A stretch of DNA of 64,000 nt, from positions 186,001 through 250,000 of IMG/VR virus record IMGVR_UViG_3300046787_000200; one strand, written 5' to 3'. The notes beneath the pieces were generated by a model. It was not told the origin of the DNA. It made no database searches and saw only the letters and a program-made list of their open reading frames with translations. Both the position numbers and the translations under genes were made by a program. Below are positions 2,672 to 15,220 of this stretch, piece by piece. The first letter of the stretch is position 1; every line of letters starts with the position of its first letter.

Positions 2672-4183
2672 ATGAAAATCAGTCAAATTATACAAGAAAC
2701 AACAACGTCAGGGTCAGTAGCACCTGTAGAATTAGGGTTTGTTAAAATGCAAACACGTAATCCAAGTGTATACGGTGACACTAAAGCAGGCAACTTACTA
2801 AAAGGTAAGAAAACAAATAAGCCATTTGCTAATAGCGTAAATGAGTCTAAAATGAAAGATTTAGCTTACGATATGGAAACAATGAAGCCTGCTGAGTTTC
2901 AAAAGAAGTATGGTAAAAGCAGAGAACAAATGAAGGCTTCTCCTATCAATAAGCCTGCTCAACCACAAAAACCAACTCCACTAGTCAACGAAGCTGACTT
3001 ACAAGAAGATGATGTAATATTAGTTCCTGGTCAGGGAAGAAAAACAAAGACTGGTTTTGTACCTCACGGAGAAAGTCGTGTAGACCACGAAGTAGAAATG
3101 GCTGTCAGCGATTTGTTCAGTGCAGGTAAGAATGCTGAGAAAATCTATAACATCGTAAGAAGTATCAGTGAAGAAGAAGGTCTTGAAGGCTGGGTACAAG
3201 AGAAGATTATTAAAGCTAATGACTATCTAAACACAGTCCGTGAATACTTAGAAGGTAAACAAGTTCAAGGTATGGCGGAAGGCTTGAATGATACTGTATA
3301 TCCTAACGCAGAAGTAATCAAAAGTAAAAATGGTAAGCCAGTTGGTGAGATATATCAAGATGGCAATAGTTGGGGTGCTTTTCACTATCGAGCAGACCGT
3401 GGATATGATATGATTGACAGTAGGGAAGATGCGATAGAAGCATTGAAAGATTTACATCAAGAAACAGGTCGCAGTCGTCCAGACTATACTATAAAAGGTG
3501 TGGCGGAAGGCTTACCACAGACTCTACGCAAAGTTGTTCCCGGACACGCCAAGCGTGAAATTGATAAGAAGATGGATGCTGGAAAATTTGGCAAAACTGA
3601 TGCTGATAAAGATGCTAACTTCCAACGCTACAAAAAGATTCAAGACAAGTTAAAAGAGCAAGGTGTGGAAGAAGGCTTTGGATTGAGGGGCACCGGTAAT
3701 CCAGGTATGCCAACTCCATATGACCAAGGACGAGCAGATGCCAAAAAAGGTCGTCCATATGACAATCCATATGACCAGCCAGGCGAAGAACAAGAACATA
3801 GAAACTATCGTAAAGGCTATGAGCAGGGTAAAGAGCAAGGTGTGGCGGAAGGCGCGGAACAAGTTTACAAGGTATTGGCTGTTGACAAGAGCAACGCATT
3901 GTCCAAACAAGTGAAGTTAAAGGTAAAAGCCAGTTCATTAGATGAAGTGTTTGAACGATTGGCAATCAATGATTGGTATCCTTTAGAAATCAACGGTGTA
4001 GAAGTAATCAACGGCAAGCGCCTAAAGCAAGGTGTGGCGGAAGGTGCTAAAGTAGATCGTATGGTTAAGCACATTGAAAAGTCTGAAAAGAAATTAGGCA
4101 AGTCTGAAAAAGAAGCAGAGAACATTGCTTGGGCTACAGCTAACAAACGTGGTATGTTAGATAACAAGAATAAGAAAGCGTAA
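2672..4183 (+). CDS. Modular polyprotein with QGVAEG-delimited cassettes, probable internal head protein
   Basis: Leader MKISQIIQE; five in-frame (Q/K)G(V/M)(A/E)EG linkers between unrelated segments. Confidence 0.75.
   Translation: MKISQIIQETTTSGSVAPVELGFVKMQTRNPSVYGDTKAGNLLKGKKTNKPFANSVNESKMKDLAYDMETMKPAEFQKKYGKSREQMKASPINKPAQPQKPTPLVNEADLQEDDVILVPGQGRKTKTGFVPHGESRVDHEVEMAVSDLFSAGKNAEKIYNIVRSISEEEGLEGWVQEKIIKANDYLNTVREYLEGKQVQGMAEGLNDTVYPNAEVIKSKNGKPVGEIYQDGNSWGAFHYRADRGYDMIDSREDAIEALKDLHQETGRSRPDYTIKGVAEGLPQTLRKVVPGHAKREIDKKMDAGKFGKTDADKDANFQRYKKIQDKLKEQGVEEGFGLRGTGNPGMPTPYDQGRADAKKGRPYDNPYDQPGEEQEHRNYRKGYEQGKEQGVAEGAEQVYKVLAVDKSNALSKQVKLKVKASSLDEVFERLAINDWYPLEINGVEVINGKRLKQGVAEGAKVDRMVKHIEKSEKKLGKSEKEAENIAWATANKRGMLDNKNKKA
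3266..4044 (+). repeat. Array of five 17-bp direct repeats, consensus CAAGGTGTGGCGGAAGG
   Basis: Copies start at 3266, 3494, 3659, 3836, 4028; periods 228, 165, 177, 192 nt, all multiples of 3. Confidence 0.95.
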
Positions 4184-4184
4184 T

Positions 4185-7100
4185 ATGAGCAGTATTCTAA
4201 AAGGTTTAAACGAATCCAATTCAGTATATGGACATAGTGATCCAGATAGAGAATACGGTGCACCTGCAACGTCATACAGTAAACGTGGTCCTTATTCACA
4301 CACAGATGATGACGATGATGGTAATCCATTCGCTGAATATGAACGTCAGCAAAGAATGTTTGCTGTTGGTCGTGCTGAGAAGGCTGCAAGAGAAAAAGCA
4401 CAGCGTGATAGTGACCACGATAGATTAGCAACCGGTACTAATGAAGAACAACTTGACGAACTATCAAATGAGAAGCTAGGTCAATATAAAACAGCCGCCG
4501 CTGCCGATGCAGGTAAAGCTGATTTAGCCGGTGACTATAAGAAAGCCGATAAACGTTTTAGTGGTATCGTAAAAGCGACTAAGAAACAGTTTGCTAATGA
4601 TGCTAAAACTGTCAAAGAAGATATTAATGCAGTATATAAAGAAGCTAAATCATTACTTACTCAATTAGATGAATCTACACAGCAACAAGTTATCAATGCT
4701 CTAAAAAAGAATGTGGATGCTGAAAAAGATAAACAAAAGAGCAAATATCCAAGACTTGATAATCCTAAAATTTTAGGAACAAATAATAAAGCTAAATCAA
4801 TATACTATCCACCAAGCAAACCTAATGTAAAGAAGTTAGATAAGCCATTACCAGAAAGCTTGGGTGATCAGCTTAAATCTAAATCATTAGATGCATTGCA
4901 ACAAGTTAAACAAAATATCGAACAAAAACGTATGGCTGATTTAGAGCAGTGGGAAAAAGATTTCAAACAAAATACTGTTTCTAAGTTTACAGCAAGACAA
5001 CCAAGTTTTATGCAACAACCTAAGCAAGTTGCAAGACCACTAGAGAAGCATTCAGTATTGAAAGCAAGATTAGCACAACTTGATAAAGCTATTGAGAAGC
5101 AAGCTGTATTAGACAAGATGTTGCAACGCCTTGATGCTAAAGGTCTATTAACACCTGCAATACAATCTGATACAGATACAAGTATGTTAGTGCGTGATGG
5201 TGCAAATGATAATTATGTTTCATTAAATCAGAAGTTGGACAAAGCATTAGAGTTCGTTAAGAACAGATTAATGACTAACAAAACCGCTTTTGCTAAACCA
5301 AAAGCGATTGATGAAAATGAAGAACTAGATGAAAATCTACACAAGTGGTTCAAAGAGAAGTGGGTTCGTTTCGGTCCAGATGGTAAGATTCGCGGTGACT
5401 GCGCTAGAGGTGATGATAGTGAAGGTAAACCAAAATGCTTACCACAAAGTAAAGCACATAGTCTAGGCAAGAAGGGTCGTGCTAGTGCGGCAAGTCGTAA
5501 GCGTAGAGAAGATCCTAATCCAGAGCGTAGTGGCAAGGCTATCAATGTCAATACTAAGAAAAATAGTAATGAAAGTGTGGTCCTTGGGCGAGATGAAGGT
5601 AACTTTGTAAGTGATACACCAGTCAATCTAGGTGGTGTAGTAGTTAAGAATTTAGGTATCGGTGATATTGTAAGTTACTTCGGACAAAAAGCAAAAATAA
5701 TTGCTATGTCTAAAACAGGAAATACATCTCGCATTACAATACCAAGTGGTATGGGTGGTGTTACTAAAGATGTTCTTACTAAAGATTTGAAACGCACAAG
5801 TTTATCTGAGGAAGAGTTAGACGAAGCCTGTTGGAAAGGTTATCACAAAGAGGGTAACAAGAAAATGTTTGGCAATCCATATCCTAACTGTGTAAAGAAT
5901 ACTAACGAAGAATTAGATATGACAGAAGGCTGGAAAGAAGAAGCACAAGATTTAGAAGACTGGTCTAAAGAAGTCAACATGAGACTGTACAGAGCGCATG
6001 AGAGTCAGCGCCCTGCACTAGCAAGACAACTAAGCAAATTAGAACAAAAACACTTTGGTAGTGAATTTACACATCCAAACTTAACTAATGTAGTTTGGTC
6101 AGCATTACGAGCATTACAAAAAGGTGAGATGGTTCACTATGATCCACAACGTGTAGGTCAAATGCCATTTGGTAATATAGTAGGTGATGATGCTAAAATC
6201 ATTGCACAGTATAATATAACTCGTGATGAACTTGCCGGTTATCGTATGTTACACGATAAAGGTATGGTAGATAATCTTGAACAATTTTTAAAGTTACGCC
6301 GTTTAGTACGTGCAAAATCATGGCCACTAGAGTATTATGAAGAATTAGAGAAGTTATCAACAGAAGAAGCATGGTTAAAAATGGCCAATGATTTGAATTG
6401 GTCCAAAGATGATATGAACGAATCAGTTCAAGCCAAAACTGATGACAACTTACGAGCATACTACGCACAACGTAAAGCAGAAAAAGAAAAGCAACATAGC
6501 GAAAGTTGCCCACATTGCGGTGGCGAAATGGTTAGTGAAGAACTAATGAATGAAAAGAAAGATGCTTGCTACTATAAAGTAAAGAGCCGTTACAAGGTAT
6601 GGCCAAGTGCTTATGCTAGTGGTGCGTTAGTTAAGTGCCGTAAGAAGGGCGCAAGCAACTGGGGCAACGGTGGTAAGAGTAATGAAAGTGTTGCGGAAGA
6701 CGATGCCGGTGATGTTGAACAGCGTATGATTGCTAAAATAGAAAAAGAAAAACAGCGTCTAGCAAAACTAAAGCAGACAGATCCAGAAGCATACAAGCGT
6801 GAAATAGAAAAGCGTAAAACTTCATCTAGAGTTCCTCCTGTGTCTACATTTGAAGATCAAGGTGTGGCGGAAGGGCCTGGTTTTGATAAATGGGCAGATG
6901 ATAGAGCGGCATCACAACTACACAAACTAAAACCCGGGATGGTTCAAGACCGCAAGACCGGCAAGTGGTATGATCCTAACAAAGAGTTTGACAAGAAGAT
7001 GAACAGTCCTGAAGTCATGGCTCAAATGAAGCGTATGGCACAGAAAGAAAGCATCGAAGAAGACCAACTTGATGAAAAGTGGACTAAGAAATACAAAGAT

Positions 7101-7199
7101 AGCATCAACTGTAGTAATCCAAAAGGCTTTAGTCAAAAAGCACATTGTGCTGGTAAACAGAAAAATGAAAGTGCAATATTGAAAGGGCTTAAATTATGA
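4185..7199 (+). CDS. 1004-aa modular polyprotein, probable internal head protein
   Basis: Short basic or Cys-containing modules separated by LDE/NES/MNE/VAE linkers; one exact 17-bp repeat. Confidence 0.7.
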   Translation: MSSILKGLNESNSVYGHSDPDREYGAPATSYSKRGPYSHTDDDDDGNPFAEYERQQRMFAVGRAEKAAREKAQRDSDHDRLATGTNEEQLDELSNEKLGQYKTAAAADAGKADLAGDYKKADKRFSGIVKATKKQFANDAKTVKEDINAVYKEAKSLLTQLDESTQQQVINALKKNVDAEKDKQKSKYPRLDNPKILGTNNKAKSIYYPPSKPNVKKLDKPLPESLGDQLKSKSLDALQQVKQNIEQKRMADLEQWEKDFKQNTVSKFTARQPSFMQQPKQVARPLEKHSVLKARLAQLDKAIEKQAVLDKMLQRLDAKGLLTPAIQSDTDTSMLVRDGANDNYVSLNQKLDKALEFVKNRLMTNKTAFAKPKAIDENEELDENLHKWFKEKWVRFGPDGKIRGDCARGDDSEGKPKCLPQSKAHSLGKKGRASAASRKRREDPNPERSGKAINVNTKKNSNESVVLGRDEGNFVSDTPVNLGGVVVKNLGIGDIVSYFGQKAKIIAMSKTGNTSRITIPSGMGGVTKDVLTKDLKRTSLSEEELDEACWKGYHKEGNKKMFGNPYPNCVKNTNEELDMTEGWKEEAQDLEDWSKEVNMRLYRAHESQRPALARQLSKLEQKHFGSEFTHPNLTNVVWSALRALQKGEMVHYDPQRVGQMPFGNIVGDDAKIIAQYNITRDELAGYRMLHDKGMVDNLEQFLKLRRLVRAKSWPLEYYEELEKLSTEEAWLKMANDLNWSKDDMNESVQAKTDDNLRAYYAQRKAEKEKQHSESCPHCGGEMVSEELMNEKKDACYYKVKSRYKVWPSAYASGALVKCRKKGASNWGNGGKSNESVAEDDAGDVEQRMIAKIEKEKQRLAKLKQTDPEAYKREIEKRKTSSRVPPVSTFEDQGVAEGPGFDKWADDRAASQLHKLKPGMVQDRKTGKWYDPNKEFDKKMNSPEVMAQMKRMAQKESIEEDQLDEKWTKKYKDSINCSNPKGFSQKAHCAGKQKNESAILKGLKL
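6858..6874 (+). repeat. Sixth copy of the 17-bp repeat, exact consensus
   Basis: CAAGGTGTGGCGGAAGG, in frame as QGVAEG. Confidence 0.95.
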
Positions 7200-7315
7200 G
7201 AGATTACACATTTACAGCAGAATGCAACAGCGGTCAGGTAAAGACCTTTACATTTCAGGCTGCCAACTACAGAGCCGCTAGAACTAAACTAGAAGAATTA
7301 ATAGCGGCAAACTAA
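7196..7315 (+). CDS. 39-aa hypothetical protein (not in ORF track)
   Basis: ATGA overlap with upstream stop; MRDYTFTAECNSGQVKTFTFQAANYRAARTKLEELIAAN. Confidence 0.6.
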   Translation: MRDYTFTAECNSGQVKTFTFQAANYRAARTKLEELIAAN

Positions 7316-7359
7316 AATGAAAGACTATGACTTCTATTGGAATAGGTTAGGTTACCCTA

Positions 7360-7800
7360 ATGGCACTAAGTTGGCGAGATAAACAAAAACAATTTTTAGT
7401 TGATTCAATAGAATTCGACCAAGATGCTAGGATTTTAAATTGGATTGATAATAAACCAACATACTTTTTAGGTGACTCTAATTATTTCAAACAACATGCC
7501 TCCGAAACTAATATCAATAGTGCAACACAAGCAATATTGATATTCAATCATCAAATACTAACCAGTGATTTAGAAAATATATTAAAAGCAACAATACATA
7601 TTCCTAAATTATGTATTGCTATTAATAAGTTTTTAATCATACCGGACAAAACATTTGAATGTAATGACAATTATGATATTGCATTATTTGATTTTGTGCA
7701 GAACATTTTTCCCGACAGGCATATAGATTATTATTATAACAAAAACGTTAAAGATACTAATTTTAATTTTGCAAGCCCCACAACACAATTTTACCTATGA
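7360..7800 (+). CDS. Hypothetical protein (AT-rich)
   Basis: 146-aa ORF. Confidence 0.6.
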   Translation: MALSWRDKQKQFLVDSIEFDQDARILNWIDNKPTYFLGDSNYFKQHASETNINSATQAILIFNHQILTSDLENILKATIHIPKLCIAINKFLIIPDKTFECNDNYDIALFDFVQNIFPDRHIDYYYNKNVKDTNFNFASPTTQFYL

Positions 7801-8375
7801 TATTGAAATCTGATATCAGAACTAATTACCTACTATATAAAAACTCTCAACCATTGTTTAAAAAATGGATTAAAGAGAAACACAAGACAATACTCACTGA
7901 TAAGTATTCAAAGTTTATATTAGGCAATTTACCTCAGGGTAGAAGTGTATGGTTTGATTCATTTGGTTATTGCTTCAAAACATTCAATAAAGACATATAT
8001 TCGGTTGAACTAAGGATGCGTGAATCGTTTTTAAAGAATTTACCGGATATTCTATGTGAGGATGATTTCTATGAAAACATGGATGCACACAGATATTATG
8101 CTAATACATTGAATCCAAAATCAATAGTGTTATATGATTCAGGAATGTTAAAGTATTATAATATTGACGAATATGTGTCGTTCTTTAAAAATATGCAAGA
8201 AATATATAACGTTCCTATTTTTATTAAAATTAATTTAGTATTTTTAGATTTTAACAGACTAAAATACAGATACAGTGACATTGGTAATATCATAGAAAAT
8301 ATGATTCCTAATTCAAAAATAGAGTTTAAAGTCAATAATTTGAATAGGACAGCACTACATTATTGGGAACCCTAA
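7797..8375 (+). CDS. Hypothetical protein (AT-rich)
   Basis: 192-aa ORF, ATGA-coupled. Confidence 0.65.
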   Translation: MILKSDIRTNYLLYKNSQPLFKKWIKEKHKTILTDKYSKFILGNLPQGRSVWFDSFGYCFKTFNKDIYSVELRMRESFLKNLPDILCEDDFYENMDAHRYYANTLNPKSIVLYDSGMLKYYNIDEYVSFFKNMQEIYNVPIFIKINLVFLDFNRLKYRYSDIGNIIENMIPNSKIEFKVNNLNRTALHYWEP

Positions 8376-8428
8376 TCAATTTATAAAAGATAGATTTGTT
8401 GATAAATACTATGATATAGAGGCATATT

Positions 8429-8869
8429 ATGTTATCGGACAATTTAAAAGTATTATTAGCAAGTACACAAAGTTTTGCAATCAAGTCACAGAACTTCCAT
8501 TGGAATGTTGAAGGTAGTAACTTTCCCCAATACCATGAATTTTTTGATACACTATACAGTGACATAAGTGGTACCATTGATCGTATAGCTGAATACATCA
8601 GAATACTAGGTCACTACACACCTGGTAGCTTAAAACGCTACTCAGAACTAAGTGTCATTGAAGACCAAATAAAAATTCCACGTGCTGAATTAATGTTTGC
8701 TGAATCATTACAAGACTGTGAAACAATGCTTCAGTTAGTAACCGCAATGTTTGATGAAGCGGCAGACGAAAAGCAACACGGTATAGAAAACTATATGGCT
8801 GAATTACAAGATTTGTACGGCAAGAAAGCTTGGTTCATTCGTTCAGTATTGAAGAAAGAACGTGAATGA
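8429..8869 (+). CDS. dps: Dps/ferritin-like DNA protection protein
   Basis: NFHWNVEG..F..YHEFF and D.IAE.IR.LG ferroxidase signatures; TAAATA at 8403. Confidence 0.9.
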   Translation: MLSDNLKVLLASTQSFAIKSQNFHWNVEGSNFPQYHEFFDTLYSDISGTIDRIAEYIRILGHYTPGSLKRYSELSVIEDQIKIPRAELMFAESLQDCETMLQLVTAMFDEAADEKQHGIENYMAELQDLYGKKAWFIRSVLKKERE

Positions 8870-9735
8870 GAGCAAATGAATTTTTAATTGAACGTGCAAC
8901 TAGTGTAGTGTTTCATTACACCGGTACTAATGCCGCATTAAAGATTCTAAAATCAGGTAACTTTGAATTAGCAAGCACAACAGGTAATCGTAGCGAAGAA
9001 CAATATGCACCAAAAGGTTATCCATACTTCTTAAGCTTAACACGCACACCAACTGGTGATTATCATAGATATGTTGGTACAGGTGGCGTTATGTTTAAGA
9101 TTGACGGTGATTGGCTAAACAATAGATATGTTGTAAAGCCAATAGACTATTGGGATCGTGCTTGGTTACATAGTGATGGTACACGTTCACGTGAATCAGA
9201 AGATAGATTGTTTAGTAAACAACCCACAGTTCCAGTTACACCTGTAACAGAAGTTCACGTATTGTTAAAAGAACAAGATGAGTTTCGTAGTCCACAAACA
9301 CGACAAATAATGATATCCGCTAAACAAAGAGGTATCCCGGTATATCTTTATACCGATGAGAAAGCTTGGAGACTATTAGATACACGTAAGAGTATTCAAC
9401 CAAGCCAAGCTAAAGATGTATTAAAAGGTCAACAAGGTCCTGGCTACAGTCGTAAGCCAACTGATTTTGTTAAACCCTGGATTGAGTTGATTGAAAAGGA
9501 TCGTGAAGAATATCTAAGCGATAGAGCTAAAAGACAACTAAAGAACTTATTATGGTATCCTGATGCGTCCGGAGATCATAACATAGGTGTAGATTTATCT
9601 AACGCACGTAAGCCAGACGCAGGAGATAGAGCGAGTGCCGTGAAGTTGATTAAATATATGAACGACAATAATATTAAGAATACAGTAGAACTTAAAAACG
9701 CTATTGTCGATAAATGGAATAAGATAAAAAAATGA
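8866..9735 (+). CDS. Putative ADP-ribosyltransferase-fold protein with capsid-targeting-like leader
   Basis: MRANEFLIE; FHYT ... LSLTR ... ESEDR (H-S-ExE arrangement). Confidence 0.5.
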   Translation: MRANEFLIERATSVVFHYTGTNAALKILKSGNFELASTTGNRSEEQYAPKGYPYFLSLTRTPTGDYHRYVGTGGVMFKIDGDWLNNRYVVKPIDYWDRAWLHSDGTRSRESEDRLFSKQPTVPVTPVTEVHVLLKEQDEFRSPQTRQIMISAKQRGIPVYLYTDEKAWRLLDTRKSIQPSQAKDVLKGQQGPGYSRKPTDFVKPWIELIEKDREEYLSDRAKRQLKNLLWYPDASGDHNIGVDLSNARKPDAGDRASAVKLIKYMNDNNIKNTVELKNAIVDKWNKIKK

Positions 9736-10604
9736 GATTAGTTGAGTTTGTTACTGAAGCCGTCGGAGGTGATTACATTTATCATAGTGTAGCACAGCCT
9801 AACCAGATCTGGAACATACTTAGAAAAGGTGTAATACAACCACAAATATCTGAAACAGATGAAGAAGGTGGTTGGGAGATACCAGTTATCAGTGCAAGTA
9901 GAAGTCAATATTATAGATACCCATATGGTGGTGGTAGTATTCAACTTGTTTTAGATAGAAATGCATTACGTCAAGCCGGTTTCAAAGTATTGCCATTCTC
10001 TTATATGCAGTTTTACAATCAAGCTGATGGCAGTGGCCCTACAGCAAGTAATCCAATGTATAAACAAGAAACAGAAGAACGTATCTATCATCCAAAAGGT
10101 ATAGGTATTCCTGTTAAGAAACCATATGTCGTGGGTATACAGATACGTAAAGAGCTAATGGATAAAGTTCCAGAAGGTCTATTGAAGTTGATTAGTGATG
10201 CTGGATTAACATTAACACCAATGAAAGATGATCCTACTAACAGAGAAAAGTTTTCACGTAAGTTAGCTAAACCACCATTGAATCCGGCACACTATTACAA
10301 ACCAAATGAAGTTCAAATAGTAGCAAGGCGAGACAATCCAAATGGATATACATTATGGAGTGTTAAACCTGATGGCTACATCTTGCCGATTGGTGATACC
10401 GGTGAGTTTAATAAGGGCGGTTTGACAAAACAAAAAGCAATAGATGCATTTAAGAGACTTACCGGTGCCAATCCAAAAGAAGTTCAAAACGTTATTAAAT
10501 ATGATGGTACGTTTAACCCAAATTATTACCACGATGAATCCGGCGGTCCAAGCAGAGAACTATACAACTGGGTTCCTCAGATAGTAAATAGTAATACACA
10601 ATGA
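9732..10604 (+). CDS. Second putative ADP-ribosyltransferase-fold protein with capsid-targeting-like leader
   Basis: MRLVEFVTE; IYHS ... ISASRS ... ETEERI. Confidence 0.5.
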   Translation: MRLVEFVTEAVGGDYIYHSVAQPNQIWNILRKGVIQPQISETDEEGGWEIPVISASRSQYYRYPYGGGSIQLVLDRNALRQAGFKVLPFSYMQFYNQADGSGPTASNPMYKQETEERIYHPKGIGIPVKKPYVVGIQIRKELMDKVPEGLLKLISDAGLTLTPMKDDPTNREKFSRKLAKPPLNPAHYYKPNEVQIVARRDNPNGYTLWSVKPDGYILPIGDTGEFNKGGLTKQKAIDAFKRLTGANPKEVQNVIKYDGTFNPNYYHDESGGPSRELYNWVPQIVNSNTQ

Positions 10605-10614
10605 GATATTTAAA

Positions 10615-12993
10615 ATGAGAGCATTAGACTTTATATTAGAAAATACAGAGGTACTTGACGAAGTAGCGATGAATCCTACTCGTTTAAAGCAAGAAGCTGC
10701 CAAGACTGGTGCTCAAGCTGGTATGGAATTCGAAATGATTGTTCCAAACGTTAAATCAGAGGACGTAGATAACGATCCAGAACCAGACTATGATAGTGAT
10801 GAATCTGCACGTGATATAGATGATATAGCTAGGTTCTTTCGTGACGGCGAATATAACAGTCGTAGACAAATAGATGAGTTAGTAGACCAACTACGTGATG
10901 GTTACTATGAGTGGGCTGACGAACAACGTAGCGAACAATGGGATCGTGAAGGAAAAGATTATTTACGTGAATACATTGAAAATGAAGGCGAGTTTGATGA
11001 AGATGCTGCCTTAGATGAAGCTTATGACCAATTAGGTTTTACTGATGAACAAAAAGAAGCGGCAAGTAAAGCCGGTGCAACAATAACAAAACGCTCAGAT
11101 GCAGTAGGTAATGAAGATTGGGAGCATTGGAAAGAAGCACAAGATTTAGTTGGCGAAAAGTTAGACCAGTTTGTTGAAGAACAATGGGATGAGAGAGGTC
11201 GCCTATACGACAATGCATATGAAAAGTGGACTGATGAAGCTGATTGGCCTGATGAAAGTGATTGGTTAGACAGTCAAAACCTTCAGACAATGCAAGACAT
11301 TGAAAGTAACTATGATGTTACTTGGCCACATTGGCAATATCCTGATTCAGGTGGCGAATTGAGTATTGACGATGTTGCTGATGAGTTCAGCAGAATGATC
11401 GGTAAGCCAATCAATTCAAGTGAGCGTTATCACGGTGCTCGTAGAGAAGCAGGCCATTATGTTGTTGAACCTGATGGTAGCTTAGAACCAGATGATAGTG
11501 ATGATGCTGGATTAGAGTTTGTAAGCCCACCAATGCCCATAGATGAAATGTTAAGTGACTTCAATAAAGTTGTTGCTTGGGCAAAAAGTAAAGGTTGCTA
11601 TACTAATGATAGTACTGGATTGCACATAAATGTAAGCGTACCTGATTTTAGTAGAGATAAACTTGACTATGTTAAGTTAGCAATATTATTAGGTGATGAG
11701 TATGTTCTAAAAGAGTTTGGTCGTGAAGGTAATACTTACACTAAGAGCGCATTGAAACGAGTTAAAGATAACATTAGAAGTCGCCCAGAAGATGCCAAAC
11801 GTTTGTTAGACAGTATGAAGGCAGGCTTAAATGATATTGCTAGTAAAGCTGTTCATAGCGGTGCTACAGACAAATATACAAGTATCAACACTAAAGATGG
11901 TTATATTGAGTTTCGTAGTCCCGGTGGTGATTGGTTAGATGCTGATATCCCTAAGATTGAGAATACATTGTTACGATTTGTTGTAGCATTAGATGCCGCA
12001 GTTGATCCACAGAAGTATAGAAAAGAATATCTAACAAAGCTTTATAAGTTGTTGTCACCGAGCAAAGACGCTACTGATACTATTCAATACTTTACTAAGT
12101 ATGCCGCAGGTGAGTTACCAAAGGCTGCATTACGTAGCTTTGTTAAACAAGCACAGTTAGAACGTAAGATTAAATCTGATAAAGAACAAGGTAAGAAGTA
12201 TTGGTGGCGTGTTGATAAAGAAGGTCAAGGACGTTCTGGTGCAAGCTTAGAAGTTGTTGCTACAAGTAAAGAAGAAGCATTAGAAAAAGCAGCCAGTGAA
12301 TGGAATATTCGTTTAGGTGCATTGACACAAGCTGATGCTTATCCTATTCGTAAGTTTGAAGAACCTGCAAGCAATACACCAAGATATGAAATCTTCAACT
12401 TGAATACAAACAATAGTGTAGAAGATGCTGAAGGAATTACCAATGATAGAGACGCATTGATTCGATTAAATGATTATTTACAACATGGTCCACATAGATT
12501 ATCGGCTGATCAGGCTAGAAATACATTTGGAATTAGACGTGTAGGTGATAGTGAACCTATACTAGCACAACCAATTAGTCGAGGTGGTAATGAACCACAG
12601 TCAAGGTTTGAAATCTATCGTATCAGTGACGGTCGATCATTAACAAGACGAGGAGAACCATTACAAATCGTTGCTAATGGTGTTGAGGGTGCTGAACGTC
12701 AGATGATAGAAATAATACGCAGTCTCGATTTTGGCGCACCTGAACTATTTGCAGTTCGTAGTGTAATAGAACCTCCGGCGCAGCCGGGCAGCACAACTGA
12801 CATACAACAACAACGTGCGGCAGGTGGTGCATTCACTGGTGCTTGGAAAGTATTAGCTGATGGACGTGAAGTATATCGTTTCAGTGGCGTAGGCAATCAA
12901 CAAAGTGATGCTAATCGTGTAGCTATTCAATGGCTAAGAAACAACGGGTACGATCAAAGTACCGAAGTTGAAGTTGTACCTATAATGAGCTAA
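10615..12993 (+). CDS. Putative amidoligase (COOH-NH2 ligase family) with acidic insert and C-terminal repeated domains
   Basis: GMEFE, EPDGSL, GLEFVSPP, STGLHINVS, YIEFRSPGG; leader MRALDFILE. Confidence 0.8.
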   Translation: MRALDFILENTEVLDEVAMNPTRLKQEAAKTGAQAGMEFEMIVPNVKSEDVDNDPEPDYDSDESARDIDDIARFFRDGEYNSRRQIDELVDQLRDGYYEWADEQRSEQWDREGKDYLREYIENEGEFDEDAALDEAYDQLGFTDEQKEAASKAGATITKRSDAVGNEDWEHWKEAQDLVGEKLDQFVEEQWDERGRLYDNAYEKWTDEADWPDESDWLDSQNLQTMQDIESNYDVTWPHWQYPDSGGELSIDDVADEFSRMIGKPINSSERYHGARREAGHYVVEPDGSLEPDDSDDAGLEFVSPPMPIDEMLSDFNKVVAWAKSKGCYTNDSTGLHINVSVPDFSRDKLDYVKLAILLGDEYVLKEFGREGNTYTKSALKRVKDNIRSRPEDAKRLLDSMKAGLNDIASKAVHSGATDKYTSINTKDGYIEFRSPGGDWLDADIPKIENTLLRFVVALDAAVDPQKYRKEYLTKLYKLLSPSKDATDTIQYFTKYAAGELPKAALRSFVKQAQLERKIKSDKEQGKKYWWRVDKEGQGRSGASLEVVATSKEEALEKAASEWNIRLGALTQADAYPIRKFEEPASNTPRYEIFNLNTNNSVEDAEGITNDRDALIRLNDYLQHGPHRLSADQARNTFGIRRVGDSEPILAQPISRGGNEPQSRFEIYRISDGRSLTRRGEPLQIVANGVEGAERQMIEIIRSLDFGAPELFAVRSVIEPPAQPGSTTDIQQQRAAGGAFTGAWKVLADGREVYRFSGVGNQQSDANRVAIQWLRNNGYDQSTEVEVVPIMS

Positions 12994-12994
12994 T

Positions 12995-13861
12995 ATGAGA
13001 GCAACAGATTTCATAATCGAACAAGAAAATCCTAAAGTAGATTTGACACCTAACTATCCTAACTATCAAGTATTAGTAGGTGAGTATGTTGGTGTAAAGA
13101 AGAATAGATTACTATTCAAAATACTTTCAGCAGAACTAAAGCCAGGACAAGGTGCAACAGATAAGATTGTTAAATCATTAGCAACTGGATTACCATTTGG
13201 TATTGATATTGAACGTGTTAGAAATCGTAAAGTATTAGAAGATTTAACTCGTAGGGGCTTCTTAGGTGGATTAGGCGCAGCCGCATTAGGTGCCACAGGA
13301 GTAGCACAAGCTAAACCAACACAGCCTGCACAACAAAAATCTGAGCCAGTTAATATGTTGAGTAATCATCCTCAACACGAAGCACTATTGCAACGTGCGG
13401 CTAAAGCTGCCGGCATTAAAGGCACGGAGTTAGCACAGTTCATGGCACAAACCAACCATGAATCATGGGACTTTAGTAGATTAAAAGAAAAAGGTATGGG
13501 TAAAGGTTACTTTGCTAAAAAGTATGACCCTAAGTTTGCCCCACAGACAGCTAAGATATTAGGCAATAAACAAGTAGGTGACGGGGAGAAGTATCGCGGT
13601 AGAGGATTCATTCAATTGACAGGACGTGATAATTATCGTATGGCACAACAAGCATTAAAGATACCGTTGTTACAACAGCCCGAGTTAGCAGAGCGTCCAG
13701 ATGTTGCGGCAAAGATTGCTGTATGGTATTGGAATACACGAGTTAAGCCCCATATACAAAACTTTAACGACACTAAAGCAGTAACGCAAAAGATTAATCC
13801 AGCAATGCGTGGCTTACAAGATAGACACGCAAAGTTTATTGATTACAAGAATATTTTATAA
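12995..13861 (+). CDS. GH19 lysozyme/chitinase-family hydrolase with leader and internal twin-arginine segment
   Basis: FMAQTNHES and YRGRGFIQLTGRDNY; MRATDFIIE; TRRGFLGG at residue ~85. Confidence 0.85.
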   Translation: MRATDFIIEQENPKVDLTPNYPNYQVLVGEYVGVKKNRLLFKILSAELKPGQGATDKIVKSLATGLPFGIDIERVRNRKVLEDLTRRGFLGGLGAAALGATGVAQAKPTQPAQQKSEPVNMLSNHPQHEALLQRAAKAAGIKGTELAQFMAQTNHESWDFSRLKEKGMGKGYFAKKYDPKFAPQTAKILGNKQVGDGEKYRGRGFIQLTGRDNYRMAQQALKIPLLQQPELAERPDVAAKIAVWYWNTRVKPHIQNFNDTKAVTQKINPAMRGLQDRHAKFIDYKNIL

Positions 13862-13871
13862 AGAGAGTTAG

Positions 13872-14309
13872 ATGAGAAAAATAATAACAATAGCATTACT
13901 AGCAATATCAACAGTTGCGTTCGCACAAAAACAAAAGCCAATGAATATCTATGATTTCCCAATCACCAGAGTTATTGACGGCGATACAGTAGCGTTTCAA
14001 GCACCGTTCTTACCACCACCATTAAAGCAAGAGTTAAGTATACGTGTATTTGGTGTTGATACACCTGAAAAGGGTCATAGAGCAATGTGTCCACAAGAAG
14101 ACCAACGTGGTCAGGCAGCTACTGCATTTACAAAAAATGCAATTACCAAGGCACAAAAACGTCAAGTAGCTATTGCTGATTGGGATAAATATGGCGGTCG
14201 TGTTTTGGGTGACGTATTATTAGATGGACAAAGTTTAAGAATGATGTTAATACAGAACGGATTTGCAAGAGAATATTACGGAGAAGCTAAGACTTCTTGG
14301 TGTAATTAA
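13872..14309 (+). CDS. Thermonuclease (SNase-like) with signal peptide
   Basis: RVIDGDT, IRVFGVDTPE, DKYGGRVLG; hydrophobic N-terminus ending AFA. Confidence 0.9.
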   Translation: MRKIITIALLAISTVAFAQKQKPMNIYDFPITRVIDGDTVAFQAPFLPPPLKQELSIRVFGVDTPEKGHRAMCPQEDQRGQAATAFTKNAITKAQKRQVAIADWDKYGGRVLGDVLLDGQSLRMMLIQNGFAREYYGEAKTSWCN

Positions 14310-14354
14310 TAATATAACGATTTTTAGATAAATACTTACTATAAGGAGACTATT

Positions 14355-14642
14355 ATGTCAGAAACAGTTCAAAAAACGATTGATCCTATTCAGCCAGACG
14401 CTGAAGGAAGATTGCATACATTTAAGTATGAAGCGGATACTTTTATTCCGTTACTTGATTGGATACAAGCTAACAAAACAGCAGAAGAATATGCTAGTTG
14501 GATGGCAAATGATCAAGTCGGTACACATACTGATGCAGGCGCAGAGTATTATATTGAGTGGCTTCTTGCTCAAAAGATGGTACATATTATAAATCGCCCA
14601 GACGGTATCGTTGTAACAAACGATTATAAAGACTATCTATAA
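14355..14642 (+). CDS. Hypothetical protein
   Basis: AAGGAG RBS; TAAATA at 14329. Confidence 0.75.
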   Translation: MSETVQKTIDPIQPDAEGRLHTFKYEADTFIPLLDWIQANKTAEEYASWMANDQVGTHTDAGAEYYIEWLLAQKMVHIINRPDGIVVTNDYKDYL

Positions 14643-14647
14643 TCTAA

Positions 14648-15220
14648 ATGCGATTTAATCAGATACTATCAGAATCCGCTGCCACTGAACTAGCTAAAAA
14701 ATTGCCTAGTTTAGAAAAGCATAATTACAATACCATTGACAAATTAATGCGTGGTATTGCGAAGAAGCACAGCATTACCGGCAAAGCTTTACATGATTTA
14801 TTCATACGAAAATATCATAGAAGCCCTGATAGTTGGATTAAAAATAAACTAGATGAAACTGGGGATAGTGAGTTACAGCAAGAAGTTGATAAATTTGCTG
14901 AATGGGCAAGTAGTAAATTACACTTGCAACAAGTCCCCAAAATTGAACTAAGTATGGATACAGAAGAGGCTCAGAATAATCATCACACCGGCGGACATAA
15001 AATGGGTGATGATAAGATTTGGGTCTATGTCAACAACCGCAACTTAGTAGATATATTACGAACAGTATTCCATGAATTAGTTCATGTACGCCAAGGTGAA
15101 CTAAATATGATTGAACCAGGCGATAGCTATCCCGGTAGTCCAATCGAAGCAATGGCGGATATGCTAGCTGGTAAATATATCAAAATATATGGTGAGCAAA
15201 ATCATCATATATTTCAATAA
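14648..15220 (+). CDS. Zincin-like (HExxH) metallopeptidase-domain protein with capsid-targeting-like leader
   Basis: MRFNQILSE; RTVFHELVH ... E. Confidence 0.65.
   Translation: MRFNQILSESAATELAKKLPSLEKHNYNTIDKLMRGIAKKHSITGKALHDLFIRKYHRSPDSWIKNKLDETGDSELQQEVDKFAEWASSKLHLQQVPKIELSMDTEEAQNNHHTGGHKMGDDKIWVYVNNRNLVDILRTVFHELVHVRQGELNMIEPGDSYPGSPIEAMADMLAGKYIKIYGEQNHHIFQ

Follow-up and report, generated by a model that had tools for sequence, protein, structure and literature searches.

[quoted passage not shown] In the giant phages phiKZ, 201phi2-1 and SPN3US, large numbers of head-internal proteins are likewise cut C-terminal to Glu by a gp21-like protease, with multiple sites per precursor, and are ejected into the host (PMC9026906). 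Phage-injected proteins are known to act in the cytoplasm or to build the ejection conduit, whereas phage endolysins that reach the periplasm through host export do so with N-terminal Sec-dependent signals or signal-anchor-release (SAR) domains and act at lysis. In chloroplasts, lumen proteins carry bipartite presequences, in which the stromal processing peptidase removes a transit peptide and exposes a thylakoid twin-arginine (Tat) signal (PMC10267391). Here, we describe a cell-wall hydrolase of an uncultured freshwater jumbo phage that appears to carry two successive address labels, one for the phage head and one for host Tat export that is probably exposed when the head protease cuts.

We analyzed a window of 64,000 nucleotides (positions 186,001 to 250,000 of IMG/VR record IMGVR_UViG_3300046787_000200), which belongs to a 352-kb genome; coordinates below are those of the window unless stated otherwise. 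The gene at 12995-13861 (+) encodes 288 aa plus stop, and residues 79-108 read KVLE/DLTRRGFLGGLGAAALGATGVAQA/KP. A preliminary description had placed a cryptic internal Tat signal at 13238-13312, directly after a Glu site and in front of a GH19 muramidase, and these coordinates are exactly codons E82 to A106. That observation is confirmed by our analysis. Between codon 2 and M121 there is no in-frame ATG, GTG or TTG, and the upstream 82 residues are conserved at the protein level in the homologues examined, with in-frame indels only, and we rejected a mis-called start or internal initiation. More than 1500 metagenomic homologues were found, of which the best 120 match at 61-100% identity over 97-100% of the query.

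The protein begins with a 9-residue leader, MRATDFIIE (12995-13021, +), a putative capsid-targeting sequence that shares the EFIxE end with the T4 CTS and terminates in an I-I-E protease site. At least ten other ORFs of the genome begin in the same way; counting this gene, eleven ORFs start with M[RK]xx[DE]F[ILV]xE or close variants. The junction [ILV]xE/Q-ENPK is conserved in homologues. The leader is followed by a conserved, basic, beta-rich domain of 73 residues (13022-13240, +; residues 10-82, pI 9.6), with AlphaFold2 (AF2) pLDDT values of 82-90 in the full model and 87.5 when folded alone. This domain is a mobile module that occurs inside many other large proteins, and both of its borders carry [ILVM]xE in 21 different architectures. 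Foldseek gave no match at E<=0.001, and VIA-align gave only weak matches to SH3, Sm, KOW and Tudor-like barrels (Z at best 4.2).

The predicted prohead-protease cleavage site is V80-L81-E82 (13232-13240, +), with the cut after E82. We found that [ILVM]-x-E directly precedes D[LI][ST/N]RR in 110 of 120 homologue clusters, while the other 10 have [IV]-x-D, with Asp instead of Glu at P1. Insertions at this position keep a hydrophobic P3 and Glu at P1 (VLE, VVE, VIE, VDE, IAE and VGE). In the AF2 model, E82 lies at the start of the only long disordered stretch (residues 78-124), while the other [ILVM]xE sites (28-30, 163-165 and 231-233) lie inside confidently folded elements. The genome also encodes a T4 gp21-type prohead protease (gene at 5674-6309, -, of genome sequence G000), which matches Peptidase_S77 (PF03420, 94.8 bits) at 5812-6267 (-) and lies between scaffold-like and acidic core-like genes and next to the gp23-type capsid gene, whose product carries the sequence LLAE/SSAG.

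The Tat-type signal peptide spans D83-A106 (13241-13312, +) and comprises an n-region DLT, the twin arginine R86-R87 (13250-13255) within the consensus T85-R-R-G-F-L90, 19 uncharged residues (G88-A106) that include a Gly/Ala-rich h-region, and AQA106/K, a possible signal peptidase I site. The segment is more than chance: the NCBIfam model TIGR01409 (TAT_signal_seq) scores 19.7 bits on the whole protein and 25.0 bits on residues 83-125, against a curated cut-off of 16.7. Pfam TAT_signal (PF10518) matches the same residues but stays below its gathering score (14.6-16.8 versus 22.7 bits), a score that the related module in P0130, one of the related-phage sequences, reaches (22.7). The RR pair lies at residues 86-87 of the translation product rather than at its N-terminus, and would be N-terminal only after the inferred cut at E82. 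RR is invariant in 120 of 120 clusters, and F89 and L90 are invariant in alignments of 24 and 55 sequences; AxA is present in 80 of 120 clusters and missing in 40. Among the best-supported variants listed in independent metagenomes from four studies, the three that fall in this segment are all synonymous, including, by our codon assignment, AGG>AGA in the R87 codon. In contrast, the adjoining P/Q/E/T-rich linker (13313-13366, +; residues 107-124) is hypervariable in length and sequence, accumulates indels in metagenome contigs and is disordered in AF2.

We next compared the signal types within this phage clade. Ten internal RR signals have an h-region hydropathy of 1.54+-0.15, while the ten true N-terminal signals of this genome, all of Sec or lipoprotein type, score 2.44+-0.28, with no overlap (P = 1.8e-4). 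None of these N-terminal signals has RR. The best 12-residue hydropathy of the signal studied here is 1.65, typical of the internal set and well below the range of the phage's own Sec and lipoprotein signals (2.07-2.81).

The C-terminal GH19 domain (13367-13858, +; residues 125-288) matches Pfam PF00182 (E=1e-12, residues 142-253), and its catalytic motif AQTNHES...RLKE aligns with PDB 7r6s and with the SPN1S endolysin 4ok7. Both catalytic Glu, E156 (13460-13462) and E165 (13487-13489), are invariant in the homologue alignments. AF2 predicts an all-helical domain with pLDDT mostly 70-90, and there is no cysteine. Muralytic rather than chitinase activity is inferred from the nearest solved relatives being phage endolysins.

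The surrounding genes provide context and contrast. Immediately downstream, a SNase-family nuclease (13872-14309, +; PF00565), whose synteny with the GH19 gene is conserved, has a true N-terminal Sec-type signal, MRKIITIALLAISTVAFA followed by Q. Upstream lie a leader-bearing 792-aa amidoligase-like protein (10615-12993, +; MRALDFILE) and two further leader-bearing genes (8866-10604, +; MRANEFLIE and MRLVEFVTE) of 289 and 290 aa, for which no Pfam or PHROG family was found. A leader-bearing 190-aa protein (14648-15220, +; MRFNQILSE) has an HExxH motif. A 1004-aa protein (4185-7199, +) that starts with MSSILKGLNE resembles the large polyproteins of related phages (MSNILKGIINE), a resemblance that rests on similar N-terminal sequences only, but this copy has no Tat module; a scan of the genome for RR found only the GH19 gene. 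The extra modules of longer homologues and the other leader-bearing ORFs gave no significant Pfam or PHROG families, except for a weak amidoligase-type match and DUF6321.

We then investigated whether the arrangement of a Glu site followed by RRxFL recurs in other proteins of related phages, a check that had been proposed beforehand. About eleven further distinct internal Tat-type signals were found inside polyproteins of 218 to 1516 aa, in the related-phage sequences P0124, P0125, P0130, P0144 (two), L020, L025, L032, L040, L042 and L043. Each has Glu 3-5 residues before RR, and ten of the eleven have L or V at P3, the exception being L040 with Thr, compared to a chance expectation of 0.052 per instance. 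Eight of nine tested pass TIGR01409. The cargo behind two of these signals has a Pfam assignment, a TonB C-terminal domain (PF13103, E=2.7e-19) and a Peptidase_M48 (E=6e-10), which together with GH19 are families that act in the periplasm. One related signal-like segment, in L006, has KQK instead of RR, so that a rule of Tat signals only is not absolute.

We searched for relatives, host clues and additional components. Among cultured phages, a megablast of 20 kb and a tblastn of residues 1-112 found nothing; only the GH19 part matches phage endolysins (35-44% identity), and the DNA polymerase is 43-49% identical to those of Phosso, Atu_ph07, CBB and RaK2. Two scans of 185,579 bacterial and archaeal species genomes found no relative. 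The phage has no TatA or TatC of its own. The T4 late promoter motif TATAAATA is absent near the gene and is not enriched in the window.

Based on these observations, our favored explanation, held with about even confidence, is that the gene encodes a head-packaged, host-delivered muramidase with a two-step, bipartite address. In this mechanism, the leader would bring the precursor into the assembling prohead, where the gp21-type protease would cut after [ILVM]-x-Glu at E9 and E82, the only such sites that lie in flexible segments, releasing the leader, the small basic domain and a 206-residue product whose new N-terminus is a canonical Tat signal. At the next infection, the product would be ejected with the DNA into the cytoplasm and refold; it has no cysteine and needs no cofactor. 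Because it is no longer a nascent chain, the host Tat pathway is the one that could take it. Signal peptidase I would then cut at AQA106/K, while in homologues that lack AxA the signal would instead stay as a membrane anchor; either way, the P/Q-rich linker would let the GH19 domain reach the peptidoglycan. The sequence analysis directly shows the anatomy of the protein, its conservation, the presence of the protease gene and the recurrence of the same layout on other periplasm-type cargo, while packaging, cleavage, ejection, Tat-dependent export and muralytic activity are all inferred without experimental data, the role of the leader by analogy with T4 only. Counting against this explanation are the Asp at P1 in 10 of 120 clusters, the Thr at P3 in L040, the lack of AxA in 40 of 120 clusters, the KQK in the internal signal-like segment of L006, the absence of a T4-type late promoter near the gene and the absence of a TatA or TatC encoded by the phage.

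The preliminary description had proposed that cleavage after VLE unmasks the signal, making export dependent on proteolysis as a gating mechanism for entry or lysis, and this interpretation is partly supported. The core idea of a cut that leaves a Tat signal at a new N-terminus gains strong comparative support from the protease gene, the shared leader, the conserved site and the recurrence in unrelated modules. However, an N-terminal extension may not prevent Tat recognition, so that unmasking may not be needed for export; thylakoid Tat tolerates such extensions. AF2 shows no contact between the N-domain and the signal, which is simply disordered. A role in entry or lysis is doubtful, because a separate lysozyme domain (PF00959) lies in a 916-aa protein encoded beside the portal gene, and a signal-less 207-aa GH19 lies among tail-fibre-like genes. 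This enzyme therefore looks like an accessory, delivered effector. A benefit of putting a muramidase in the periplasm at the start of infection is not obvious, and local wall remodelling or exclusion of competitors are speculation.

Several other mechanisms could account for parts of the data, though each is unlikely. The signal could work in the producing cell on the uncleaved precursor, with the host Tat system exporting the GH19 domain late in infection and the leader and N-domain remaining on the cytoplasmic side of the signal hairpin, as such a topology leaves any N-terminal extension in the cytoplasm. The enzyme would then be a Tat-dependent accessory lysis enzyme, comparable to a signal-bearing or SAR endolysin, and head packaging would play no part. 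The Tat-type signal and the absence of a predicted masking contact are compatible with this reading, and endolysins with export signals exist, but it does not explain the CTS-like leader shared by eleven ORFs, the conserved [ILVM]xE right before the signal, or Tat signals at residues 600-900 of multi-module polyproteins of 1000-1500 aa; moreover, the phage's other exported proteins use ordinary N-terminal Sec signals, and a signal-less GH19 is available as an endolysin. About equally unlikely, the packaged and cleaved protein could be released into the periplasm or at the inner membrane during ejection, with the RR-plus-Gly/Ala stretch acting as a membrane anchor or insertion segment of an ejection protein rather than as a Tat substrate signal, and the GH19 domain digesting the wall for entry. 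Ejection proteins with muralytic domains and membrane segments occur in other phages, such as P22 and T7, the P/Q linker resembles periplasm-spanning tethers, and 40 of 120 clusters lack AxA. Yet a plain anchor would not need the full S/T-R-R-x-F-L-K consensus, which is invariant and passes a curated Tat model in 9 of 10 tested instances; the h-regions are too weakly hydrophobic and in some homologues only about 13 residues long, and the phage already has the lysozyme domain beside the portal gene.

Slightly less likely still, the leader may not be a packaging signal but, for example, a conserved recombination or translation-initiation cassette, with polyproteins cut, if at all, by another protease in the cytoplasm to produce ordinary Tat substrates within the same infected cell. 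Packaging is inferred only by analogy, and the leader is a hot spot of module exchange, as a 310-base alternative lies right behind it in four runs (and in the homologue P0002). Against this, the leader shares its end with the T4 CTS, its last residues fit the specificity of the encoded gp21-type protease, and the leader of the 792-aa amidoligase-like protein aligns with an internal linker, EFELLE, at residue 857 of a 1516-aa polyprotein in L043, which fits a protease and packaging signal better than a translation signal. The least likely reading, already disfavored, is that the motif is a non-functional relic of a captured bacterial Tat-exported GH19 gene, or a chance resemblance in a flexible linker. 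Some related signals do keep a Met two residues before RR (ADMNRRGFLK), as if an ancestral start codon had been fused in, but RR is invariant with only synonymous variants listed beside a hypervariable linker, the motif recurs on unrelated cargo, and no homologue was found in the scanned bacterial and archaeal genomes.

A broader reading is possible, though we consider it somewhat less likely than not: a clade of freshwater and estuarine jumbo phages would pack its heads with leader-tagged proteins and long polyproteins, which the prohead protease dices at [ILVM]-x-Glu into separate effectors. Modules meant for the cell envelope (a muramidase, a TonB-C-like domain, an M48 peptidase and others) would be cut so that a Tat signal becomes their N-terminus, and the next host's Tat machinery would re-export them to the periplasm after injection. 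This would be the first case of virion-delivered proteins that hijack Tat, and a bacterial-virus counterpart of the chloroplast bipartite presequence. A route that sends pre-made, injected proteins back out to the periplasm is not known to have been described. If true, it would show that a virus can use the one bacterial export pathway that accepts already folded, non-nascent proteins, that head maturation proteolysis can serve as a targeting switch as well as an assembly step, and that jumbo phages may carry a periplasm-directed takeover or exclusion toolkit. The layout also gives a sequence rule for mining metagenomes for virion-delivered envelope effectors (a CTS-like leader, then [ILVM]xE, then 2-4 residues, then RRxFL) and offers a natural design for delivering proteins to the periplasm with engineered T4-type capsids.

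Compared to bacterial Tat signal peptides (TIGR01409 and PF10518), the segment shares the S/T-R-R-x-F-L consensus, a weakly hydrophobic Gly/Ala-rich h-region and a cofactor-free foldable passenger, with AxA as a possible signal peptidase I site that is present in 80 of 120 clusters, but it lies at residues 83-106 with no start codon nearby. Compared to exported endolysins and GH19 endolysins such as SPN1S, it shares a GH19 domain with both catalytic Glu and, in our model, holin-independent access to the periplasm through a host export pathway; unlike a SAR endolysin, its hydrophobic stretch is internal and preceded by a canonical twin-arginine consensus, and no description of this arrangement and no Tat-dependent or capsid-delivered case turned up in literature searches, whose coverage of subscription journals was too limited for absence to be proof. 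The giant phages that cut ejection proteins after Glu use S/A-x-E and belong to a different lineage, and no export signals have been reported on their products. As in T4, a family of diverse proteins shares only a short leader ending in hydrophobic-x-Glu, their genes lie outside the head gene cluster, the genome encodes a gp21-family protease and leaders are sites of module exchange, although membership in the T4 system is by analogy; T4 internal proteins carry no export signal, while here a second targeting signal follows a second protease site and relatives string many modules into polyproteins of up to about 1500 aa. The compartments, proteases and lineages of chloroplast bipartite presequences are entirely different (stroma and an M16 metallopeptidase versus virus capsid and prohead serine protease), and here the two steps would happen in two different cells, but by analogy, without homology, the logic is the same: a first address takes the protein into a first compartment, a protease resident there removes it, and a second address, a Tat signal, is left at the new N-terminus for a second membrane passage.

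We first examined the segment at 13238-13312, which the preliminary description had presented as an internal Tat signal peptide placed directly after a Glu site, without an in-frame Met next to it, and in front of a GH19 domain. The window occupies positions 186001-250000 of contig C1 of the phage genome (G000), a 352,012-bp virus record with 36.6% G+C. The ORF at 12995..13861 (+) encodes a protein of 288 aa (P0001) whose residues 79-108 read KVLE/DLTRRGFLGGLGAAALGATGVAQA/KP, with slashes here and below marking predicted cleavage positions or module boundaries, and 13238-13312 corresponds to codons E82 to A106. No ATG, GTG or TTG lies in frame near the motif, and the minus-strand ORFs over this stretch are short shadow frames. 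The segment passes NCBI's curated Tat model, as TIGR01409 scores 19.7 bits in the whole protein and 25.0 bits on residues 83-125 against a cut-off of 16.7, although it stays under Pfam's gathering score. The C-terminal half is a GH19 domain (PF00182, E=1e-12), and its AQTNHES...RLKE motif aligns with the SPN1S endolysin 4ok7. The observation is therefore confirmed.

We employed AlphaFold2 on 55 homologues to predict the protein's structure, which yielded a confident small domain at residues 10-75 (pLDDT 82-90), one long disordered stretch at residues 78-124 (pLDDT below 50) that holds the V-L-E site, the Tat-type signal and a P/Q-rich linker, and a helical GH19 domain from residue 125. Of the five [ILVM]-x-E triplets in the protein, only those ending at E9 and E82 lie in flexible parts. 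The protein has no cysteine. The predicted products are a 9-residue leader, a 73-residue basic domain (pI 9.6) and a 206-residue signal-bearing pre-enzyme.

The phage has a T4-type DNA polymerase that is 43-49% identical to those of the jumbo phages Phosso, Atu_ph07, CBB and RaK2, and no closer cultured relative was found. It encodes a gp23-type capsid protein (PF07068) and a gp21-type prohead protease (PF03420), which lie in a head gene cluster, and the capsid protein carries ...KKQLLAE/SSAG near its N-terminus. T4 gp21 cuts after L/I-X-E (PMC9026906). Eleven ORFs of the genome begin with the same kind of leader, examples being MRAKEFIVE, MRATEFVFE, MRANEFLIE, MRLVEFVTE, MRALDFILE, MRATDFIIE, MRFNQILSE and MRISEILTE. 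The T4 capsid-targeting sequence is MKTYQEFIAE (PMC8442874), so the EFIxE end is shared. Five of these ORFs surround the GH19 gene (window 2672-15220). Among the leader-bearing genes, the one at 14648-15220 (+) encodes a 190-aa protein (MRFNQILSE/) with an HExxH motif (VFHELVHV), which may be a small packaged metallopeptidase although no family was assigned to it, while a Dps/ferritin-like protein (8429-8869, +; phrog_3636, Pfam Ferritin in the syntenic contigs) is encoded among them but has no leader of its own. Leaders and internal linkers appear interchangeable, as the leader DFILE/N of the neighbouring 792-aa amidoligase-like protein aligns with the internal EFELLE/S at residue 857 of a 1516-aa polyprotein in L043, one of the related IMG/VR loci.

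We next investigated whether the signal and the preceding Glu site are conserved. More than 1500 metagenomic homologues exist, whereas none was found in 185,579 bacterial and archaeal species genomes. In the 120 best cluster representatives, RR is invariant and [ILVM]-x-E directly precedes D[LI][ST/N]RR in 110, including cases where one-residue insertions preserve a hydrophobic P3 and Glu at P1 (VLE, VVE, VIE, VDE, IAE, VGE); the other 10 have [IV]-x-D. AxA is present in 80 of these representatives, and the linker that follows varies widely in length and sequence. When contigs from four independent studies were aligned to the gene, the three variants in the signal among the best-supported variants listed were all synonymous (AGG>AGA in R87, GGC>GGT and TTA>CTA), while indels clustered in the linker. 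In contigs of four runs from these four studies, the position right behind the leader (window 13008-13019) is also joined with 310 other bases between. This alternative form corresponds to the 388-aa homologues, which carry an extra module of about 100 aa between MRATEF and EQ/ENPK; in the homologue P0002 the added module ends ...YLEE/QENPK. The leader acts as a site of module exchange.

A whole-library HMMER search with residues 1-112 showed that the 73-residue basic domain (13022-13240, +; NP[KR][VI]DLTPN[YF]PNY...V[KR]NR) is a mobile module inside many large proteins. It is found in more than 20 architectures, always between two [ILVM]xE sites, and in 21 architectures both of its borders carry [ILVM]-x-E. 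Its predicted fold is only weakly similar to SH3/Sm/KOW-like barrels, and it might be an internal DNA-associated protein or a core-binding element. Related phages also encode polyproteins of 1000-1500 aa (L040:3686-7741, L042:3407-7741, L032:6105-9146 and L043:3050-7597), three of which start MSNILKGIINE and are built of recurring modules, several ending in -NE, -SE or -AE. The short separator QGVAEG recurs mainly in P0125, P0134, P0141 and P0144, which are proteins from the representative search. The window's own 1004-aa ORF (4185-7199, MSSILKGLNE) starts with a similar N-terminal sequence and has no Tat module.

The proteins found by this search, together with ORFs in 42 related IMG/VR loci (L numbers), contain eleven further distinct internal Tat-type signals. 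These are VDE/DLSRRGFLKG... in P0124, LEE/VDRRGFLKG... in P0125, LAE/ADMNRRDFIKG... in P0130, VDE/DLTRRGFLRG... in the first copy of P0144, VAE/ADMNRRGFLKG... in the second copy of P0144 (the same as the 218-aa ORF of L040), LKE/ADMNRRGFLGN... in L032, VDE/ADMSRRGFLGN... in L025, VDE/ADMNRRGFLGQ... in L020, VDE/ADMNRRGFLKG... in L042, LNE/ADRRDVLKT... in L043 and TDE/AIDRRGFLKG... in the 1352-aa protein of L040. Every one has Glu 3-5 residues before RR, and ten of the eleven have L or V at P3. As the background frequency of [ILVM]xE in these proteins is 0.0178 per residue, a site at positions -3 to -5 is expected in 5% of cases. The modules are partly homologous and the instances are not fully independent; however, P3 and P2 vary while the pattern holds. 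Eight of nine of these segments pass TIGR01409, and some reach Pfam's threshold. Where the cargo can be named, it belongs to a family that acts in the periplasm, namely a TonB C-terminal domain (PF13103, E=2.7e-19), Peptidase_M48 (E=6e-10) and the GH19 domain of this gene.

As a comparison, we analyzed the phage's N-terminal signals. All true N-terminal signals of the genome are Sec or lipoprotein type with Lys-rich n-regions, and none has RR. An example is the SNase-family nuclease (PF00565; 13872-14309, +) encoded directly after the GH19 gene, which carries a classical Sec-type signal; the pair is syntenic in related contigs, and it is speculation that such a periplasmic nuclease might act against superinfecting DNA. 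The hydropathy of the h-regions separates the two classes completely (2.44+-0.28 for the N-terminal signals and 1.54+-0.15 for the internal RR signals; P-value 1.8e-4). These measurements fit a simple logic, which is inference, whereby proteins made in the infected cell can use Sec as nascent chains, while proteins that arrive ready-made can only use Tat. One exception tempers the rule. At residue 878 of a 964-aa ORF (L006:2659 onward), a signal-like segment reads VDE/NWKQKLGAAALTGAMALGAAGANA/R, lying behind a V-x-E site but with no RR and no TIGR01409 hit, and it may be a Sec-like or variant signal.

The best-supported mechanism is a bipartite address, whereby the leader would take the precursor into the prohead, the prohead protease would cut at E9 and E82, and the 83-288 product would be ejected, refold and be exported by the host's Tat system. 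It would then be released at AQA/K or, in homologues lacking AxA, remain tethered by the signal. The anatomy rests directly on the sequence analysis, whereas every subsequent step, from packaging and cleavage to ejection and export, is inferred. In particular, export of the uncleaved precursor is not excluded, and the AlphaFold2 model shows no shielding of the signal. The preliminary interpretation, that cleavage after VLE would unmask a Tat signal and so gate entry or lysis, is partly supported.

A role in entry or lysis is doubtful because other enzymes of the genome are candidates for these functions. Outside the window, a 916-aa protein encoded next to the portal gene (G000:C1:9275-12025, -) has a T4-lysozyme domain (PF00959) and several Gly/Ala-rich hydrophobic stretches, and is a likely virion-borne entry muramidase or tape-measure-like protein. 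A second GH19 protein (G000:C1:167454-168077, +; 207 aa, 34% identical over 152 aa) has no leader and no signal, lies between two large tail-fibre-like ORFs, and is a candidate endolysin or tail-associated enzyme. The leader-bearing enzyme may instead be one of several delivered envelope effectors.

The stretch is found in freshwater and estuary metagenomes from several independent studies. Within the literature accessible to us, which was incomplete, no description of Tat signals on packaged or ejected phage proteins was found. The closest logical parallel is the chloroplast lumen presequence, where removal of the transit peptide exposes a Tat signal (PMC10267391). Compared to T4-type internal proteins, which are already known to be leader-directed and protease-processed, the proposed arrangement differs by an added second targeting step.
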